DNA of 63,201 nucleotides, counting the filler, from Platydemus manokwari (Eukaryota): the NCBI GenBank assembly GCA_037951405.1. It is 5 parts of 5 records of this genome, joined end to end, with 100 filler letters (N's around TTAATTAATTAA, not from the genome) between each part and the next. Parts side by side here need not be neighbours in the genome. Positions count along the whole stretch, not along the records: positions 28,712 to 41,894 come from JBBMOY011805835.1; 4 more parts are not named here. One strand, written 5' to 3'. Below, in pieces: positions 28,712 through 41,894 of the stretch. Under the pieces are notes generated by a model. That model ran no database searches, was not told the origin of the DNA, and saw only the letters and a program-made list of their open reading frames with translations. How positions within the stretch are numbered: position 1 is the stretch's first letter; each line of letters starts with the position of its first letter. A program made the position numbers and the translations under genes.

Positions 28712-30839
28712 CAATAGTTTTACTTGTAAGTAATCTTATCATAATTTATTTTAACAATAATGCATTATAATTATAAATTATATTCATTCAGCAAGATTGT
28801 TTGAAAAAAAAACTTAAAAAATTATTTTAGATTTTTATAAAATACATTTGAGCATATTTTGTAAATGAATATTTGCAATATGTTCATTAATTCGTGTTCT
28901 AAATGAATTTCTTGTGATACACTTATTATTATTATATTATTTTATTCCACTATTTATTAAAATTCCCTCATTATTTCATTTCAGAAATTGTCTTTGATTT
29001 TAATTGAGAAGTATAAATGTTTGAGAAGAAATATTTACATAAACATTGATTACGGACAAATGGAGCACTATCAGTAGATGGTGAAGGGTATGATTTCAAT
29101 TATAAAATGATTTCAGTTGAGATATTTGTGTAATCTTTATTTTAATTAGATTATTTTAAAAAACACATGGGTTAGCTTTAGGAATATTTTTATATTAACC
29201 TTCAGCTTTACATTTTTCTATGAATTCTTCATCAAGCGAGTAGATTTATGTTAAAATTATTATCCACGGATCTGTTGAAGACAACGATAAATATTCAAAT
29301 GTCAACGGAACATTTTAGAATATGAAATACATTGCCAACCATAACTTATCAGCATCCTATCAGTCAAAGAAAATTCAGAAAAAACTATAAATGTATCTGA
29401 TCTCTTAGCTTTTGAAAACACAGATATCAAATACAGTACATATTTAGGATGCATAAATCAAAATCATACAAGACAGAAAGTCGTTGGTGAAAACTATTTT
29501 CTCCAAAGAAGAAGAACAGTGTTCAATGGTTTATATTGTTATTCACTATTGGCCATTAATCCAATAGAACGAGTTCTATATATTCTAATTTAAATTCAAA
29601 GTTTGATTACAAAACTAATCTCTTTCAAGAAATCTAATACTTGTACTTACGTAACAATACAACATAAAAATATATTCAAATTATACTTATAAAGGGAATG
29701 AAAAGCGATTCGACAAAAATCAACCCCTTAAAAGTTTCATATATATTTAAATAAATTTACTGGATGCTTTCCTGCCAGTATCTTCATGTTCTCTTATATA
29801 GCTAGGGTATAATTATGGTCTTGTGTCACTCAATATTGTGCCTTACCTTTATTATATCACCTAATTGTGTAACTGTGATTGTGCAAGTGTCCCCAATAAT
29901 TGTGACTATTACCTTATGAGTCACTAGTAGAAATTCTCAGCTTTTATTTATTTAATGCCGGAATTTATTATGGCAGAAAGAAATTCTCTATGATAAAATT
30001 TGTTTTTTATACGTATCATTTAAATACCATAATTATTTTATTGATTAACACTGCTTATGAAGCGCGATAATATGTGACTATCTACTTGTTAATGTTATTT
30101 CATTAAAGCTTGTTTTAAGTTGATTTAATTTCTAATGGTTTCTACTTGTTAATATAAATGCTGAATTCTTTCAGTATGTGTGTTATTATTTCGGGTTTAA
30201 TTTCAATATAATAATTTCGTGGTATTTTATTTCTTTTCACAAACTTTCAAGAATTACATAAAATGTAATTGTTCATGAATAATAATAATTATTATTATCA
30301 ACTTTATACAACAAACTGTTACTTTTAACACATTAATTCTCAGATTTTTGTCTTCAGTAGAACCCTTCTCGGATTATTGTACCCCTATAAATGCACATAT
30401 TTACTTCAATGACAATTATCAATTTCGGTAGCTTTATTATAAAGTTGTTAGCTTGGAAAAAATAAAAAGTTAACTAAGCTATATTATTTCTTATAGTCTT
30501 GACTGAATTATCTTACTTAATAATATTCCGTTTGAACTTTCTTAATAATAATTTCTATTGAAACGGGTACTATTCGAGATTAATCTTGATGATAATAATA
30601 AAGCTTATTTCAATATATTTATAAAAATGAAGGTTTACTGATTTTCCATTAGTTTTTCTTTAGTATTTTTAATCATTGAATTATAAAATAAGCATTAAAT
30701 TATTCATTTATTTGACAATAAGTCTCTTGTCAAGATTATTTTACATGGTATTAAAAATAATGCATGAAATCAGGTAACGTTAAGTTGTATAGCAAACGTT
30801 AGATTACTCCAGTCGTAATAATTTTTTGAATACTTAAAT

Positions 30840-33729
30840 TCAAAAGTAACTTCTTCGTTTATATTGAAGGTGATAATTATCATTAAGATCAGCATTTACT
30901 CCTTCAACAATTGTGTTATCCCCTGGTTCGACGTTATCGACTGATCTTGATTTGGATTTCGACTTCATTTTCGACATGGGTTGATCTGTTTTAGCAACAG
31001 ATTTTTGTTGACTGGTTACCGATTTATCATTGTAAACTGAAGAAGAATTTACTTCACGAGATACTTTGCGTAATTCCTCCTTTTTGGACTTTGGTGCTTC
31101 TTCAGAGCTGTATTGCTTACTCTGTTGGCTTATAACTTTGGTTGGCATGCGGACGTCTTCATCTGAAGGTGTTCCAACTTCTTCATAATCCATTTCCAAC
31201 TTTATCAGATCATCTCGAGCTTCAACGAATTCACCTTCTTCCATTCCTTCACCAACATACCAATGAACAAAGGCTCGTTTATTGAATAAAAGATCAAATT
31301 TCTTATCTAGTCGTTGCCAAACTTGAGCCACAGCAGTCGTATTACAAAACATTGTACAATTTCGTTCCGTAGGCGCTATCTCTGATCCTGGGACAATTGT
31401 TGGTGGCATGGGACTGATACCTAATTTAAAACCAGTAGGACACCAATCAACGAAAGATATGTCTGTTCTTCTTTTAACCTCATAAACTCCCAGATTGACC
31501 TGCCTTGGAGTTATTAATCCACGATATTGAATACAGCACGACATATACTTTCCAAGCCTTAAATCGCACTTTATCAGCTGGTTAGATGATTCGAAAAGCT
31601 CACGAGTAAGCTCTGTTATGCTCATTTTTTCATGATTTGCTCGATGAGGATCAAGAATTGGAGCGTAATTTACAGCGGGAAAATGAATCCTTGGATACGG
31701 AACTAAATTCGTTTGTAATTGCAAAAGATCATGATTCAAAGACGATCCAAATCTGATTGACACCGTCATTGCACTAAAAATCTGTGCCAAAAGTCGATTT
31801 AGATTGTTATAAACTGGTCGAGGAATACTTAATTGTCTCGTACAAATATCGAACAAAGCTTCATTATCAATAAGCATAACAACGTCAGTGTGTTCGATTG
31901 ATTTAGAGGCAGATAACAATGCATTGTATGGCTCAACAATTGCAGTTGCTAATTGGGGTGCTGGATAAATACATTGCTGAAATTTAGCACTCTTCGAATA
32001 CTCGATATCCAAATGTTCAAAAATCAATGCTGACAAACCAGATCCAGTGCCTCCTCCATAACTATTGAGTACTATGAATCCTTGTGCAGCCTGGCATGCA
32101 TGAACACATTTTCTCAATTGATCTAGGAATCTCTCAATAACATTCTTTCCAACTGTAAAATGGCCACGAGCAAAATTATTAGCTGCATCTTCACAGCAAT
32201 TGATGAGATAATCTGGATGCCATAAATGACGATAGTTAGCTGTTCGAATTTCATCTATAAATAAATTTAATGGGTAAATATAAAAATTTGGATAAAACGA
32301 AGGATGACTGGTTATGACCATCATGAGAATTATTATTATTATTTAATACATTTTCAATTTCAAAAATATTATAATTCATCATTGACTTATTATAATTTAG
32401 ATTTCTTTTTTAATTAGCCCATTCGTTCAGTAAGTTCTTTTCAATAAAAAAATTTCAAATAACTATAAATGCCATGGTAAATCCAAAGATGCATTTCAAA
32501 TTTATTAAAAATTGTTTTTTTCAAAAAGACTTGTTATAAAGATTCATAAAAAACACTTTTTAAATTAAATAATATTTAATATGATGTATTTTTGAAAAAT
32601 AAATTAAAAATCCAATTATTCCTCGCAAGAGCTCTTAACTGTATTAGTATCCGAATTTTGTAAATATCACATGTTTGCTTCATATCTTTTCCCTGTTTAG
32701 TTGATAGTCGTTATCATCAAAGATTTTGCTTAGCATCAAAACATTATCAAATTGAACGTCGGTTTGTTTCTTTAAATTGCAGTAATGGCTCTTAGATTCT
32801 CTCTGAGAATTTCTCAAGTATTGTCTTTGCTAGTAACTGCATTTGATGTTTGAGGAGGATTTTTAAAGTGAGTTTTTATCAAAACTTTTTAAAAATGCCA
32901 TATGAAAGAATGTTTTACATTTTAATTTCAAAATTGAGCTAAATATCGGCATATAGAGAATCTAGCATATAAAAGTATCATTCAATATAGAATTTTTGAA
33001 TCTTAATTTGTTGTTTATTTGACAAAACAATGCATTATTTTTACAAATTTACTACTATTTTAGTGATCATATAAGATTAATGATGACATAAATAACATAA
33101 TACTTCCTTTGTATTTTAATAAAAATTTCAACCAATGCACCTGTCGAATTGAATTTACAATATTCTTAATATTAAATCATCGTCTGAATTAGTTAGCTTG
33201 TGATAAATAATACATTGATATTTTAAAAAATAAAAACTTTTTGAAACACGGGTAGGTGACCATATTCAATTCAATTGGCAAGCTTATGAGTTTAAAAAAT
33301 AAGTAGCCTAACACACAGTAAAACCTTTAGATGATGAATAGTGAATTAAATGGAATAAGACTTTCTTAAAAAATTATTTAGAGTATTTTCTGTAATATTA
33401 ATTTTTTATTAAATAATAAAATCGTATGCTAGAAAATAATCCACTAAAGAACCCATAAATTACCTATAACAGTTGGTTCCAAATCTATATTTATAGCACG
33501 TGGAACATAATTCCCACTTGGTACTTCTTGAAAGAACGTATGAAAACCAATATTATGCTCAAATCTTTCAGTTTCACGAAGTTTACCGTTTGCTTCGATA
33601 CCATGTTCAATACAAAATAATTCCCAAGCTGCGTTGGCCATCTGTATACCGGCTTGACCAACATTAATGCAAATAACTTCTCTCTAAATTCGTATTGTAA
33701 CGAGATTCATTTATCAATTCACATACCAT
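30840..33729 (-). CDS. Divergent alpha-tubulin, 545 aa, 3 exons, with long C-terminal extension
   Basis: Exons 33729-33727 (ATG), 33683-33464 and 32254-30840 total 1638 nt. The introns after codon 1 and within the PTVI/D codon match conserved alpha-tubulin intron positions. Motifs: [85 protein letters not shown]. Confidence 0.95.
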
Positions 33730-36685
33730 ATTTTTTTGTTGTCAACTTTTGATTGAATTTTTATTTTTAAATAAATCTGATCTGCCAATTTAGACAGAGA
33801 AATTCTTAAGTATTTCCAACAATCTTGTTGAGTTCAATATCGGAAAGTCAATTTGAAAATTGATTTTGTTTTTCAAAAATATCTAACGTTAATTATTTTC
33901 TAAATTTCTTGTTTGAAAATTTTGTCGTCGAAATTTCATAACTTCGGATTGTGGAAGATGAAGATTTCAAAACAGGGAATAATGTTTTTAAAATATGAAA
34001 TGTAAATGTCGATAAATTTAATATATCAGGAGAAGATTGTATTTTCTGTATTTGTTTATCCTATCTCAAATAATGGACTATTGATCAATGATTTTGTAGT
34101 AAGTATTCAGAAAAAAGTGATTGTTCGAAGCTACTCAATCATAAAACTTCCTAATTTATTCTTTTACTTAGCGAAGCCTTTTGTTAGGGGATGGATAATG
34201 ATGTTATGTGCTACAGACGATGATAAATCCTGAAGTTTTCCAATGTTTCTTGAGTCTTTGGTTCTGACATTTTTAACATACTCTCTAATTAAGTTAATAG
34301 TCGTGCTAAATGTTATTCCACCACTTACCAGTACAACAATATCGTATATTATTATAATGCCTTATTTGGAGTTCTTAATATTGAATTCAAACGAATAATT
34401 TGGAATATTAGGACAATTGAACGAAACCATCATAAGATTCATAATCACATTAATGGATTCAATGGATACAAATTTTTATGAAATTTTTGTTTTAGAAAGA
34501 TATTTTTCAATATTTATACGAAACTCAAGGGAGAATTTGAGAAGTTTTTTGTTGCATAATGAGTGTACATTGGTATAGATCTCAAATCAATAAAATATTA
34601 ATAAAAATTCATTATATATCAAAGTAACTTAATTTCGAAATAGCATTAAAATTAGTGAATACAATATCAGATAATTAGATAAAACCGAAAATAATAAATT
34701 TAGAGTTAAACACCATGTCTGAATAGTTTCTTCTTTAAAGCCTGTCAATAAAAAAATGCTTACAGTTAAAAACATTTTATACAATGGAATTTATAAATAA
34801 AATTCATTCAGAAAAGTGGATACATATAAGATACTTGTTGAATGGTGTTCTATTACATAATTTCCTGATTAGAAATTTTGTATCACATATTCATGTTTTG
34901 GAAATATAAAAGACATGAGCATGTTTCTCAAAATCATGTCGAAATCAATTCAATTACTTAACCAAAGGAATCGACCAAAATATTGAACAATCTCAAATAT
35001 TTGTAAATAAATATGGTCTTTAAATCTAAACTTAGATTAACCATGTATTTTGATGTGTTTCGGGTTTGTCGTTTTTTGTTTAACTTATCAATCTCCGATT
35101 GTATTATTTCTATTATGGAATTTCAATGTCGTCTTATCAACCTCACGTGGTTTTAACCAAACCAAGGAACAATTCGAAAGCTTATGTTGCTTTCTGTTTT
35201 CGCCCCACACTCAATATTATATGATGATAATATGAATGGCAACAATTTTATGGTTAACCCTTTAATATTATACAATTCTCAGACAATGAATAGGCTTTTG
35301 CTTCACTGAATATTTATTGACACTACAATTAAGACACCAAATAAAAAGTACACTCAAACGATTTGTCCTAATAAATTCTGGAATAAGTTACGGTTAATAC
35401 ACTCCACGCTTTGGAGTAAAACCAAATTACCGTCAGAAGGGTGTCTGAGACACAGCTCGATAATAAGACAATAAACGATAGATACGATCATATTTTATAC
35501 AATAATTGGACTCAGGTTGATTGACAATAGATTACCGATATACATCTGTACAGTAATGGCCCTTCTAATTCAAATAATACAGGGTTTCCGTAATTCTAGT
35601 CATATTCGCAATTTCTATGTGTTCGGATTCTGGTATTTTAAACCCCCTTATATAGTTTTCGTGAACAATGTTTTATCGTCACGCATAAAATTTTTAATCT
35701 TTACAATTAAACTTATTCCCTGCGGGTTTTATTTTTCTTTACTCATTCAGAATCTTATAAGAAATATTTCAGAATTGTTTTGGAAAATAGATTTTGATAG
35801 CCACTTTAATTGTCAATTTATTTAATTAAATATCAATTCTTATATTTCAAAATATAAATATATTTTTAACCGTATCTCAAACATATAATAATTATTATTT
35901 CTTTATAAATAATTAATTATTAAGAATTCGTCAGGACTTTGTTACAAAATAAATTGATACATTTTCTTTAATCAACCAAAAGCAATTTTATTTAAGATAA
36001 ATTGTCTAAAAATAAAATGGCATTAATTCATGCGAATATCGATACAATTGTTATGTTACTAAATATGCATCAATACAACTACACGGTTATTGTCAATATT
36101 ATATTGTTACAATTTGTTTGATTTATTTGTCTCCCCAACAATTCCATAATTTAATATTTATGATAAAATTTATCTCTTATTCATTTTGGATAGAGTTAAT
36201 TATGTATGTTACCTCACTGAGTCACAATCATCAATCAAAATCACAGCTTAGTTTCCAATGTCATTGAAATTATTGTAACAGTATTGTGAAGTCTTATTTA
36301 TCTGATAGAATGAATTATTTATAGTCTTTAGCTGGTCAGGATTTTTAGATTCTTATTTTTAGTATTTTCGCCACCATATATTAAAACCAATTTTATGAAT
36401 TACTAATAATTTTTAAATGTCACTCGGTCATGTATTGTCTTTTTCTCGAGACACCGGTAAACTTTGATTTTCAACGAAAACTCTAAAATTTCTAAAATAT
36501 TTTTTAAATTAACTTTTTTGTTATAAACTTTACAATATGTGTTGCTGTGAATTGAAACTCAAAAACTCAAAATCAAATCAAGCGGATTAAAATGTTCAAA
36601 ACATGTAATTTGAAAATATAAACCCGACAAACAATTGAAAGCATAATAAATATTAAATGGAAAAATAATAAGGCTTCGATGATTA

Positions 36686-39600
36686 TTATTGAATGATACA
36701 GATAGAACTAGATACGACTTTCTTGTCGATCTTATTGGTGATTCCGTTAACGGGTTGCAATCTTTGAATTTCTTTCTGGAATTATCAAAAACAATTATTA
36801 TTATTATTGCTATTAATGCTCAATATATTTTGATGTTCAAAGAATTTAACTTTATATGCTATAGTTTGTTTTAATAAACATCACTAAACAAACACAACTA
36901 AACAAATCATTTTGTATAAATAATCGAAACATTTTATTTCTAAAAATATAAATATAAAAATTCTATAGTGATAATATTTTCGACTTAATCACCACCATAA
37001 ACCTACAAAATAACACACCTGCAAATGATCGATCACCAAGTTGCTCTGAACAAGTTGATGTTGCTGACATTTCAATTGTTCCTGCAAATTGACCAATTGT
37101 TCTTCAAGATGTCTTTCCCGACCGCTTTTCGTGATCAAACTCGACAGAGGTTGTTTAAATGTATTAATTAAGTTGTCCCCATCCTTGTAAGTTGGTAAAG
37201 AAATCGTATCTAATGAATCTGATGATGATTTCTGATATTAAAAACAAATTAATTACATTCCTAATTTGTAATCAAAAATAATTTTTTATTTATATTTTAC
37301 TTTAAAACAAAAGTCCATATATAGATTTGAAATGAAAATCCATCTTAATATCAATTATAATATTTAATTTCAAAGTTTTAATTCATGGTGTGTAGTATAC
37401 AGTCAAACTTGCTAATTATCGCTTGTTATGTTCCAGGAAAAATCAAGATATTAGCAAAGTTTAGTTAAAGACCACTGAAAATCAATAGGTAAAGAATTTT
37501 TTTATTTATTACATTATCTGAATGCATTTTCCTAAAGGAGATTTATTTATCCACAACTTAATCTGTTGAAATGAGCTTTACGCTTGTCAAAGAACTTCCA
37601 TTCTTCGGTTCCATTGGATAGTAGAAAATATTTCGATATATCGACAAACGAATCAGTCGAAATATTATTCATTCACTAATAAAAAAACTTTTTTTGGTAA
37701 ATTGAAAATCGAAAATGAAAATTCATAATTTATTCATCATCGTTTCGGAAATTTGATGAATAATATAAGAAATGACACAAGTAATAAGTATAACGTAAGA
37801 AATATAAATGATATGAATAATGGCTGATTTAGTTGTGTTGACATTCGGAAGTAGAGGAAACAAGGCTATTCAATTATTAGATTGGACTCACACAATTACA
37901 TTTGGAACTACTGAAAGATGTCTGATCACTCGTCGAATATATGCGCAATGAGTTCTTGGATGTGTTATTTTTAAAAGTAATCAATCTAGGTGAGCATTTC
38001 ATCAATTCAGTTTCCGAACCACATGAATTGACATTGGAATTGTCGACATCATTCACAGCATCGATCAATTCATTTTTTATCCAAGTTGGTATCTAAATCG
38101 ATATAATTAACTAAATGACCAATATATCATGACACAATGGAGTCCAACTGTATCGGTTTCGGAAACTTTTTCATCGATGTCTCCAATATTTCCAGATACA
38201 CCATCAATATTGATCGACGAATCGATTCGTCTCGAAGAACCACGCAAATTATTCAACTTTGACGAATCAGTTTTCTTTCTTCTGAAATAATAAATGATGA
38301 GAAATGTTATTCGTTACAATATTCATGTTTGATCAGAGAATTTTCTGAATTCTACCATACATATCTCAACAGAAATATTTTAAGAATTATTTATTTAAAG
38401 TAACCCTGCCACTGTTTTGGATCTCCTTCGTCGTTTCGGTGGAGGGGCTGTAGTCTCTATTTGAACTAAAAGACTGTGATCTTGATATGTTATACAATTT
38501 GACAAGCAAATCAATTCTCTGTTGACACAATCATTGTCGGGATTTTTCAAACTAGATATAGATATTATAAAAACAAATTATCATTAAAAGCCCACTGTAA
38601 AATGAGAACTGGTGTGGTATAAATCTTTGTCCTGTGATTGGTTTCATCGTGGAGTTCATCCAGTAAATGAGATGAATGATGAAATTGTGGAAGTGAGGCT
38701 GATAAAAATGCAAATATAATTTGAAAAGTATTTCATAATATCAGAAACAAATAATACAATTATATGTGATAAGGTGAGGTAATTTTGAGTTCATTATATA
38801 TCAATTTATTTTATAGAATTTAATATTTGCTATTTTAATTGATAAAATAAAGTTTTTAGTATATCGGCTCGTTATTATTCGTGAGAATAGTGATAAATAT
38901 TGTTCCTGGTGTCATAGTATAATAATAATATTTATTCATAAAACATTGGATTTTATTTTTAACTTTGGTAAGTTAAGATTCCAAAAATTTAGCTTGTCAG
39001 AATAATCACTGATATCAAATCTTCTCAATGAGTAATCATCAGTCGCTTTCAAAATTTTCTGATACTGTTTTACTCACTAGCAAGAGAAGTCTTCAATTAA
39101 ACACTGTCACGGGAGATAAAAAGTCATTGATCGGTTTGTTAGGGAAACAAATTTTATTATTGTGAAATATTTTTTATTAGTGAACATATCAATAAATATT
39201 GTCACTAGCACCATGGTACAGATTACTCATAAAAGTCCGAATAATTTAAAGAAATCTCAAAGATAAATCTTTTATAATTAAAAGACTCGATTGTTATTAA
39301 TAGTTTCTAGTCATTTTCGTTATATTCGTTATTCAACTGAAAATATGAGATAATTAAAAAGAAACATAACTAAATTAAAACCCTTAATTAAAAATCTTAA
39401 AATTTAAAAAGGTCAAAAATTTTTAAAACAAATTAACAATTAAAATTACTAGTATGGGAAGCTTAAATGTTTTTAATATATTTCAAGCTTCCTGAGAAAT
39501 ACGATCAATAATTTAGAAGAAAAAAAACATTAGAGAATCAAAATAATTATCAAATAAAAAATCATAATTTTACCTGATGGTAAAACACAATTCAGATTAA

Positions 39601-41864
39601 CATTATCATGAAAATGCTTATCGGTGCCATCATTGTTTAATAAATTATTCTTTATGGTTTCATCACTGGTCACTGAAACTGATCGTGAATCTGATATTTG
39701 TTTACGGCCCCAAAAATATAGAGAATTGAAATTGACACAAGCCACAGAAAAATTAGATCCACAAGCAACTTTCTAAATGACAGGATTTCACGGATTTTAT
39801 TCCAACTCATATATATTTTACATCACCATATATTGTCCACAATACTGCAGAACATTGATATCATTATCTATCTATATCACTTTACAAACAAAATAATATT
39901 TAAAACCAAAAGACTAAATTTGCCATATTTGAATTATTATGATCACATTCTGATGTAATTTTTAAGTTTATTATGTAACATATTTGTTTTATCTAGCCCA
40001 TGATAGCACATGTATTGAACATGTTGATATTTTATAAATTGAGGAATCATTAATTGGACTGCTATCTTAATGAGATACAAAATTGTAAATAGCCATTATT
40101 TGAGTTATATGAAACGAAATTAAAGTTTTAAAATAAGATTGTGAATTTATCTAAATATATATTTGATATTCATCGAATTTTCAAATAGATCTTACCAACA
40201 CAATTCTGAAACTACTTAAATTTCCACATTCAAGATTTATCTCTTGAAGATATCAAAGAATAAATACTCGATAAATGTTTCGAAACAATTTTCCTTGTAA
40301 GGAATAACCTTATATTAATCAACCTATATTCTGTAATATCAATCATGCATCCGTCCATCCTTAAAATATTAGTTTTTATACCAGTTCCTCAATATTATTT
40401 TTTTATTTTAAAAGAGTTTGTGATGTTATGTTGCAAATCATATCACAAAATAAATCACAGAAAGTCGATGAAATGTCATAGGTAAAATGTCCAATGGTTC
40501 ATTTTAACCTGAAAGGATATCCACACTTTATGGATTTAATGTTCTATCTTTGATGAGATGTTTTCCCAGAATACAATCATATCACAAACGTCCAGAATAT
40601 CTACCAATAAACAATTCTGTTACATTATCAACCATTGAATTGCACCAAAATATCAAGATATTTCACAAAATATTTCGAATTATTAGAAAGTGTACCAAAT
40701 AAACTTTACCGTTATTTTATGTTTCTTCATAATTTTGACCTCACAAGGTATCGAAATGTTTTTGCAATTCCCATGACCAAGTTCACCACTACTGTTCAAA
40801 CCAAAGGAAATCACTTTGCCAGATTCACACGTTACGATAGTATGATTGCCACCCATACTGACTTGGTTGACTCTCTGGTGCATTAGGGCTCTGACATGTG
40901 TGAATTCATGAACACCATTTACCACTGGTTGTTGTGCTAGCGTTTTCATACTCATCAGAAATCCCAATCGAGCGTTCAGACCAAGCTTGTTACCTGAATG
41001 CAGTGAAACAGTAAAAATTCTGGAAAGTAGCATCAAAATAGAGGAATATGTGTGGTTTTTTATTTATTTTTACTTATAAGCAAGAAAGGGTTTTAACCCA
41101 AAAACTCATTTCGGCATTTAGAGTGCCAAGAACCAAGTGACCGGATAAAGGGAATGAGATTCATGAATCTCTTTGATACTGATGAGGTATATTGACTACT
41201 AGTGGTTTAATCAGCGTGTAATCACAGCCTTTACACATGTCATACAAAAGTCCATCAGCAAATTCTGTCAAGCTAAGCTATTATTATCATACAGTACTGG
41301 TATTATCGATTTTTATTTATGATATCAACTCGTTTAAATTGTTTAGGAAAATTAAATTGATAATAATTCTTATTAAATACCATAGTTACTGCCAGAAGCC
41401 AATAATGCACCAGTATCTGTCAGCAACATTGTAGCATCTTCAGCGGTGAAGGCATTTCTAATGAGACCTGGCTCTTTCAAATGGATTTGTTGAGGTGAAC
41501 AAAACAAATTTGAACTATCCAATCCTAATTGACCATTGTTATTGCTCCCCCAGGCATAAATAATTCCATCAGAATTTACAACGACAACATGACTTTTGAT
41601 TGAGCTGATACAAACCTATGAGAAAATGAATATATACTAATATTCTTTCAATTAAAATAGGATATTTTCCCGTGCTACAATAAATGAACAGTAATTTTGA
41701 GATTAACTCTTACAATATCGACAGTCAAAAGGCTCTCAATCAATTTCGGTTTGAGAACATCTTTGAAATCACCATGTCCCAAGGATCCACTGACACCACT
41801 ACCACATGTCATGATTATTCCATTTTCTGATCCAAAAATCGAGAAATTGGTTCCACAAGCGATT
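36686..41864 (-). CDS. NEK8/NEK9-family protein: RCC1 repeats plus C-terminal tail; 5' part (expected kinase domain) cut off by the gap
   Basis: In-phase exons 41864-41714, 41615-41381, 40993-40710, 39772-39574, 38698-38596, 38551-38405, 38281-38149, 38092-37892, 37231-37019, 36775-36686 (TAA). RCC1 blades IACG..GIIMTCGSG..GSLGHG, YAWGSNNNGQLGL, GSNYGNKLGL, FGLNSSGELGHG and VACGSNFSVA..YFWG parallel NEK8; IPTWIKNEL plus a terminal coiled coil parallel NEK9. The kinase domain is not visible. Confidence 0.85.
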
Positions 41865-41894
41865 CTAAATCATGGATGGAATCAATATACATAC

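Follow-up and report, generated by a model that had tools for sequence, protein, structure and literature searches.

The window analysed here is a stretch of 63,201 nucleotides (nt) from the flatworm Platydemus manokwari (assembly GCA_037951405.1), made of five parts of five records joined through fillers of 100 letters. Its part at positions 28,712 to 41,894 comes from record JBBMOY011805835.1 and carries, on the minus strand, the whole gene of an alpha-tubulin in which the catalytic residue Glu254 is replaced by Gln. The best explanation, to which we give a probability of about 0.6, is that the gene encodes a functional, lineage-specific dugesiid alpha-tubulin isotype without activation of the GTPase (guanosine triphosphate hydrolysis), belonging to a flatworm Gln254 clade and used likeliest in the male germ line.

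The gene extends from 33729 to 30840 and consists of three exons (1638 nt joined, 545 codons) with one terminal stop. Exon 3 matches the Pfam families PF00091 Tubulin (2.5e-30) and PF03953 Tubulin_C (2.8e-39) and contains the GGGTGSG signature. The best Protein Data Bank (PDB) hits are all alpha chains (E about 1e-152 in HMMER against solved alpha-tubulins), the identity to canonical alpha-tubulin is about 53–56%, and the beta-tubulins form the outgroup of the tree described below with support 100. The N-terminus reads MREV, and the alignment is ungapped through 357–372, with the alpha-type S9-S10 insertion present. The residues around the GTP of the non-exchangeable site (N-site) are all canonical (G10, Q11, A12, Q15, D69, E71, D98, N101, S140, G143-G146, T179, E183, N206, Y224, and N228); N249, D251, and the M-loop residues H283 and E284 are also retained. 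In the AlphaFold model of the full-length orthologue, 397 residues have a predicted local distance difference test value (pLDDT) of at least 90, and the model superposes on alpha-tubulin chains in Foldseek with a TM score of 0.98 and a root mean square deviation of 1.2–1.4 Å. The product should still be able to fold, to hold its own GTP at the non-exchangeable site, to form dimers with a beta-tubulin, and to become part of the lattice.

The Gln of the window protein is found opposite Glu254 of FDGALNVDLTEFQTN in the solved alpha-tubulins, in a region aligned by HMMER without gaps. The first-pass annotation of this DNA had reported the replacement, with its CAA codon, and a change of the T7-loop Gly to Ser; translation and the alignment confirm the former, and the latter is present as G246S. 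The complete set of changes in the T7 loop and helix H8 is D245G, G246S, A247S, V250H, T253L, E254Q, and F255L, the T7 loop reading GSS in place of DGA. Within the subgroup of the window gene no carboxylate occurs at positions 252–256, and position 253 is Leu or Val. The Gln does not look like chance variation: in the first 161 proteins fetched, the column of Glu254 is covered by 221 motif copies, with Glu in 208 and Gln in 8; all eight Gln copies belong to relatives of the window gene, and the remaining five are broken gene models. Outside the Gln clade, Glu is universal among the ordinary alpha-tubulins first fetched.

The best database matches of the window protein all have Gln at position 254 (A7M6D9, Q7Z1L8, and the Logan proteins P0001, P0037, P0100, and P0104). 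A7M6D9 (BAF75867.1) from Dugesia ryukyuensis is an orthologue of 534 amino acids (aa) with 85% identity over the full length, an identical T7/H8 segment, and a tail that likewise ends with YKRR.YF. Q7Z1L8 (AAP47197.1) from Schmidtea polychroa is a paralogous clade member (58% identity), in which D251 is lost as well (NLSQI). At least five Gln paralogues are present in the single run SRR33002330 (P0001, P0037, P0100, P0104, and P0178), encoded by CAA in four of them and by CAG in the fifth. Asp253 directly precedes the Gln in P0100, P0104, P0161, P0178, P0200, P0203, and P0314 (DLDQL, DFDQL, DIDQI); in these sister paralogues the carboxylate has possibly shifted, a situation that recalls the shifted Glu reported for Toxoplasma alpha3.

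A maximum-likelihood tree of 128 rows was calculated with the trait columns removed (quick search, with support from the Shimodaira-Hasegawa-like approximate likelihood ratio test, SH-aLRT, without bootstraps). The window gene is located inside a 12-row clade (11 Gln and 1 His, SH-aLRT 95) together with A7M6D9, Q7Z1L8, and the Logan paralogues, and the subclade that holds it has supports of 96 and 99. Three more Gln rows extend the clade to 15, with support 88. The exchange of Glu254 for Gln probably arose early in the flatworm clade and has been kept since. A word-index search with the clade profile returned one further clade member, P0161, and its matches were mostly mis-predicted tandem or fused alpha-tubulin models. 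P0161 and P0183 have doubtful N-terminal extensions. P0121 (UniParc UPI0006092CDF, 618 aa), a gene model of the orthologue whose exon-3 boundary is fused to ~165 aa of unrelated N-terminal sequence, is almost certainly a chimeric prediction.

The clade profile was also searched against 1.84 billion cluster representatives, and the Glu254 column was read in the best 150 of them and in the added clade members. In this combined set, where representatives at 50% identity over-sample divergent sequences and the counts are therefore not gene frequencies, position 254 is Glu in 105 rows, Gln in 18 (11 of them new representatives), Asp in 16, one of Val, Ala, Ser, His, Gly, Leu, or Asn in 12, and Lys in 4, the last being the beta-tubulins. 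Among the named rows, Fasciolopsis buski and Sparganum proliferum have Gln, Paragonimus westermani has Ala (KAF8569058.1), and Penaeus has Asp. The Gln rows of Fasciolopsis and Sparganum are placed elsewhere in the tree, on weakly supported branches. A separate alpha-like clade (P0187, P0206, P0196, P0264, and P0212; SH-aLRT 100) shows Val or Ala in the same column. Divergent alpha-tubulins, including several from flatworms, seem to have lost the catalytic Glu repeatedly. The Penaeus row is the P0189 cluster (Penaeus monodon, P. vannamei, P. indicus, and P. chinensis), described as 'tubulin alpha chain-like', with ~700 aa and the sequence DLRDFKTN around Asp254. The human E254D mutant has been discussed as a slow hydrolyser.

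Among relatives with DNA available, the closest is L001; this genomic contig, assembled in run SRR33002330, holds the orthologue of a related planarian. In the core, 349 of 358 residues are identical (97.5%), and 181 of these identical residues are encoded by different codons; four-fold degenerate sites differ in 84 of 127 cases (66%). The rate of nonsynonymous change (dN) in the core is 0.024 by NG86, while silent sites are saturated, with the synonymous rate (dS) beyond the range of correction in both NG86 and YN00. Because of this saturation, the ratio of the two rates (omega) was taken from the four-fold sites, whose Jukes-Cantor distance of ~1.6 gives roughly 0.015. The tail is under far looser constraint, being 56% identical to that of L001, with its composition and the last block EP.DNT..E......Y...YK(K/R)R.Y(F/Y) kept. 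The window gene is a live alpha-tubulin gene under strong purifying selection and not a pseudogene; the same view in the first-pass annotation is borne out by the single terminal stop, the GT..AG introns, and the value of omega. Retention of Gln254 in orthologues, with dN/dS, had been set beforehand as a test of that annotation, and Gln is conserved across both orthologues and paralogues.

The protein departs from canonical alpha-tubulin also outside the T7/H8 segment. The identity is lowest in the M-loop (29%), H10 (29%), the H1-S2 loop (33%), and H9 (33%), and reaches 74–82% in H11-H12, the surface for motors and microtubule-associated proteins (MAPs). Position 40 is Glu, with loss of the K40 acetylation site, and the H1-S2 loop lacks one residue relative to the canonical form. 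The short acidic tail ending with EEY is replaced by 110 aa rich in Ser and Lys (19 S, 14 K, net charge +4), with the end YKRRSYF. In the AlphaFold model of the orthologue the tail is disordered, except for a terminal helix of low confidence. A long non-canonical tail is present in every member of the clade, acidic in the group of P0100, P0104, and P0161 and mixed or basic in the group of the window gene.

It is established that alpha-Glu254 of the incoming dimer is inserted at the exchangeable site (E-site) of the beta-tubulin below and triggers hydrolysis (restated in PMC10319017, PMC7018511, PMC8764682). Microtubules of human alpha-E254Q contain GTP throughout the lattice and show no catastrophes; the end-binding protein EB3 is bound along their whole length (dissociation constant about 8 nM), the lattice is mildly expanded, and the pure mutant grows in a curved and discontinuous manner (PMC11893814). 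The statement in the first-pass annotation that engineered substitutions give a GTP lattice and hyperstable microtubules holds for the identical human replacement. By analogy, there is a strong case that activation of the GTPase by the window isotype is reduced. Its T7/H8 face would dock on the beta-tubulin of the dimer below and would fail to activate hydrolysis of the GTP of that subunit; a lattice with much of the isotype would remain in a GTP-like state protected from catastrophe, and hydrolysis would be slowed in mixed lattices. With K40 and the terminal EEY missing, and with a long tail that is not acidic, the set of MAPs, motors, and modifying enzymes able to act on the protein would be altered as well. 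The strong constraint on the whole of the tubulin body argues that the protein still works as a lattice subunit.

The isotype is most likely used in the male germ line, in microtubule arrays of spermatids or sperm, although the tissue and the array are a matter of speculation. The transcripts of D. ryukyuensis with the strongest specificity for sexual worms include one beta-tubulin contig and two alpha-tubulin contigs, which are expressed in the testis (PMC6467871; see also PMC12654950). A published primer for one contig, TR45012, encodes RGHFTV, which is part of the motif RGHFTVG, and among the 329 proteins compared this motif is found only in members of the Gln clade. TR45012 matches otherwise only via the universal GEGMEEG. 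The sequence link of the testis contigs of D. ryukyuensis to the window gene is suggestive and not proven. The clade member P0314 lies on a contig of 1460 nt with an intronless full-length reading frame that looks like a transcript. Together, the testis contigs, the TR45012 motif, and P0314 are hints of expression of the family and of a connection with the male germ line, and they do not identify the tissue of the window gene itself. The first-pass annotation had read the gene as a candidate tubulin dead in GTPase activation that may build or seed non-dynamic microtubules, for example sperm cortical or axonemal arrays, and this reading is supported in part: the substitution, its conservation, and, by analogy, its likely consequence stand, while the role in sperm arrays stays speculative. 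A link between the loss of K40 and non-acetylated cortical microtubules of sperm was considered and dropped, one paper showing staining of the sperm cortical microtubules of schistosomes for acetylated tubulin.

Several points weigh against this explanation. The effect of E254Q is known from human TUBA1B/TUBB3, and the window protein differs at ~47% of the core positions, among them T7/H8 residues close to the Gln and positions in the M-loop and the H1-S2 loop, so that catalysis, assembly, and lattice geometry could differ. D251, the second residue implicated in GTPase activation, is still present. With the growth of pure human E254Q being curved and discontinuous (PMC11893814), a lattice made of the isotype only may need compensating changes. 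Substitutions of residue 254 are fairly common in very divergent alpha-like tubulins, some of which may have left the microtubule lattice. As for the germ line, the tie of TR45012 to the clade rests on one short motif, and neither the TR27538 primers (REILSL, EKHGIDR) nor the other TR45012 primers match the A7M6D9 protein.

An alternative is that the Gln is silent or compensated, with GTPase activation kept by D251, the partner beta-tubulin, or other T7/H8 changes; the microtubules would then be of the ordinary dynamic type and the specialisation would lie elsewhere, for instance in the tail and the lateral contacts. D251 and N249 are indeed retained, alteration is greatest in the tail and the lateral loops, and Asp253 in the sister paralogues (DLDQL, DFDQL) is a hint of a shifted carboxylate being tolerated or put to use, in line with a proposal made for Toxoplasma alpha3. 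However, the single E254Q replacement suffices to block hydrolysis in human tubulin with D251 intact (PMC11893814), the subgroup of the window gene has Leu or Val and not Asp at 253, and the S. polychroa member lacks D251 too (NLSQI), and we regard a silent Gln as unlikely. A tubulin that has left the canonical lattice and does not polymerise, or polymerises differently, for example as a cap, a seed, a partner sequestering beta-tubulin, or part of a non-microtubule structure, would no longer need the catalytic residue. Such a role would agree with the M-loop, H1-S2 loop, and H9/H10 being least like canonical alpha-tubulin, with the loss of K40 and of the acidic tail, and with the many very divergent alpha-like tubulins without Glu at 254. 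It is nonetheless quite improbable, since the 358-residue core, its lateral and interdimer surfaces included, keeps 97.5% identity between species in which change at silent sites is near saturation, H11-H12 have 74–82% identity to the canonical form, and the fold of the model is indistinguishable from that of lattice alpha-tubulin; in addition, the isosteric Gln kept in 11 of the 12 clade members suggests that the pocket is still occupied at the interface. A pseudogene, or an assembly or sequencing error at the codon, has nothing in its favour beyond the unusual residue and the fact that no RNA run with the gene was found, and its probability is negligible: both were rejected in view of the intact frame, the GT..AG introns, the omega of ~0.015, the same Gln in the cDNA-derived database entries of two other planarians, and an identical Logan contig (see below).

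The proposed isotype without GTPase activation has a close counterpart in the engineered human alpha-E254Q (TUBA1B E254Q/TUBB3; PDB 9F3B and 9F3R; PMC11893814), which has the same change of the same residue and likewise keeps D251 and the nucleotide-binding residues. This likeness is the ground for predicting hydrolysis-deficient, catastrophe-free, EB-binding GTP lattices. The human protein is a laboratory point mutant of an otherwise canonical isotype, whereas the window gene is natural, about 53–56% identical to canonical alpha-tubulin, and altered in the T7 neighbours, the M-loop, the H1-S2 loop, K40, and the tail. Among natural tubulins, the apicomplexan alpha3-tubulin (Toxoplasma, Hammondia, Neospora, Besnoitia, and Cystoisospora) has D251 replaced by Thr and E254 by Gln or His; on the basis of sequence alone, its GTPase-activating function has been proposed to be slow or absent and the protein to stabilise polymers, and it is absent from the main proliferative stage (PMC10056924). 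It shares with the window gene the nature of a divergent isotype, the Gln at 254, and an unusually long C-terminal tail. In contrast to the window gene, which keeps D251 and starts with MREV, alpha3-tubulin has lost D251 and has the N-terminal insertion MPREI; on account of the retained D251 and the normal N-terminus the window gene is not a member of that group, and the two presumably originated independently, in protist and animal lineages. In beta-tubulin, the T7/H8 face (Lys254; DLRKL in our survey) naturally lacks the catalytic carboxylate and the contacted alpha N-site GTP stays unhydrolysed; that interface is intradimer and constitutive, whereas the non-catalytic face of the window gene product is interdimer, where hydrolysis normally drives dynamic instability.

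The A7M6D9 and Q7Z1L8 entries have been in the databases for years, annotated only as 'alpha-tubulin'. The S. polychroa gene was reportedly published in 2003 as a divergent alpha-tubulin. In the literature searched, no mention was found of residue 254 in any flatworm tubulin, and the human-mutant study (PMC11893814) was the only paper found with 'E254Q' and tubulin together. As far as we can document, the sequences point to the first animal clade of alpha-tubulins that naturally lack Glu254, with a minimal and isosteric substitution. The flatworm family with multiple paralogues, the deposits from two other planarians, and the apicomplexan isotypes without catalytic residues were all absent from the first-pass annotation.

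The coordinates of the gene features are collected in Table 1. The boundary of intron 2 is found at the same place in L001–L004, genomic contigs of relatives, and as these are paralogues that have the intron position in common, the family arose by duplication at the DNA level and not by retroposition. Both intron positions (directly after the ATG, and TVI|DE) match those of vertebrate alpha-tubulin genes. The region is very AT-rich (24–37% G+C per kb).

Table 1. Features of the alpha-tubulin gene in window coordinates.
Feature	Position	Strand	Description
Exon 1	33727..33729	minus	ATG only, GT splice donor directly after
Intron 1	33684..33726	minus	43 nt, GTATGT...ATTTAG
Exon 2	33464..33683	minus	220 nt; residues 2-74 and first base of codon 75; GQAG N-site motif; ends with DLEPTVI
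Intron 2	32255..33463	minus	1209 nt, GTAATT...TTATAG; phase 1, within the codon for Asp in TVI|DE
Exon 3	30840..32254	minus	Remaining GTPase domain, Tubulin_C domain, long tail, stop codon TGA
T7 loop and helix H8 segment	31680..31751	minus	E254Q and neighbouring changes
Gln codon CAA	31719..31721	minus	Equivalent of Glu254; residue 253 of the window protein
C-terminal tail	30843..31172	minus	110 aa, non-canonical

The codon reported in the first-pass annotation is confirmed. A search for sequencing runs with the gene gave one DNA run, X1, and no RNA run. A Logan contig of X1 (1753 nt, depth 15) is identical to the window, letter for letter, over 31246–32998. The run is probably the source of the assembly itself, and hence the agreement is not independent: it excludes a slip of the assembly and not an artefact at the level of reads, a concern which the relatives with Gln make moot. 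In the same run, the bin 31220–31323 shows a summed contig depth of 341, against ~12–17 elsewhere, and several contigs overlap only 31228–31280 (one mismatch) before diverging into unlike sequence. The peak looks like the contribution of many tubulin paralogues of the same genome that share an invariant coded block. At 40686–41036, on the minus strand, an exon-like open reading frame contains RCC1 repeats (Pfam RCC1 1.1e-10, RCC1_2 6.6e-07, RLD 6.9e-11) and is probably part of a neighbouring gene with an RCC1 domain that lies upstream of the tubulin gene at a distance of ~7 kb.

Dynamic instability is driven by the GTP hydrolysis that alpha-Glu254 triggers, and hydrolysis-dead tubulin has so far been a laboratory mutant, dominant-lethal in yeast and purified from insect cells only recently. 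If very strong purifying selection maintains a natural animal family of isotypes with the isosteric Gln, evolution would be seen to make stable arrays by the same trick. It may be, and we put this forward as a tentative idea on the doubtful side, that alpha-tubulins without catalytic activity have radiated in flatworms (one sample has at least five Gln254 paralogues, and trematodes and cestodes have further variants with Gln, His, Ala, or Val) and that they build or dope hydrolysis-free arrays in the GTP state, such as the cortical microtubules and the 9+'1' axonemes of flatworm sperm; no earlier animal case of a natural 'GTP-lattice' tubulin would then be known. The family would supply sequences that are already past the growth defects of pure E254Q lattices (curvature and discontinuous growth), and would offer tractable genetics, with planarian RNA interference and sexual versus asexual strains. 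Such a system could probe the effects of a permanent GTP lattice in vivo on EB proteins, motors, severing enzymes, and lattice spacing. Related variants in parasitic flatworms bear on the differences between tubulin isotypes of parasite and host. If the idea of such hydrolysis-free arrays is true, the stability of these microtubules would be encoded in the tubulin gene itself, and not supplied by MAPs or modifications.

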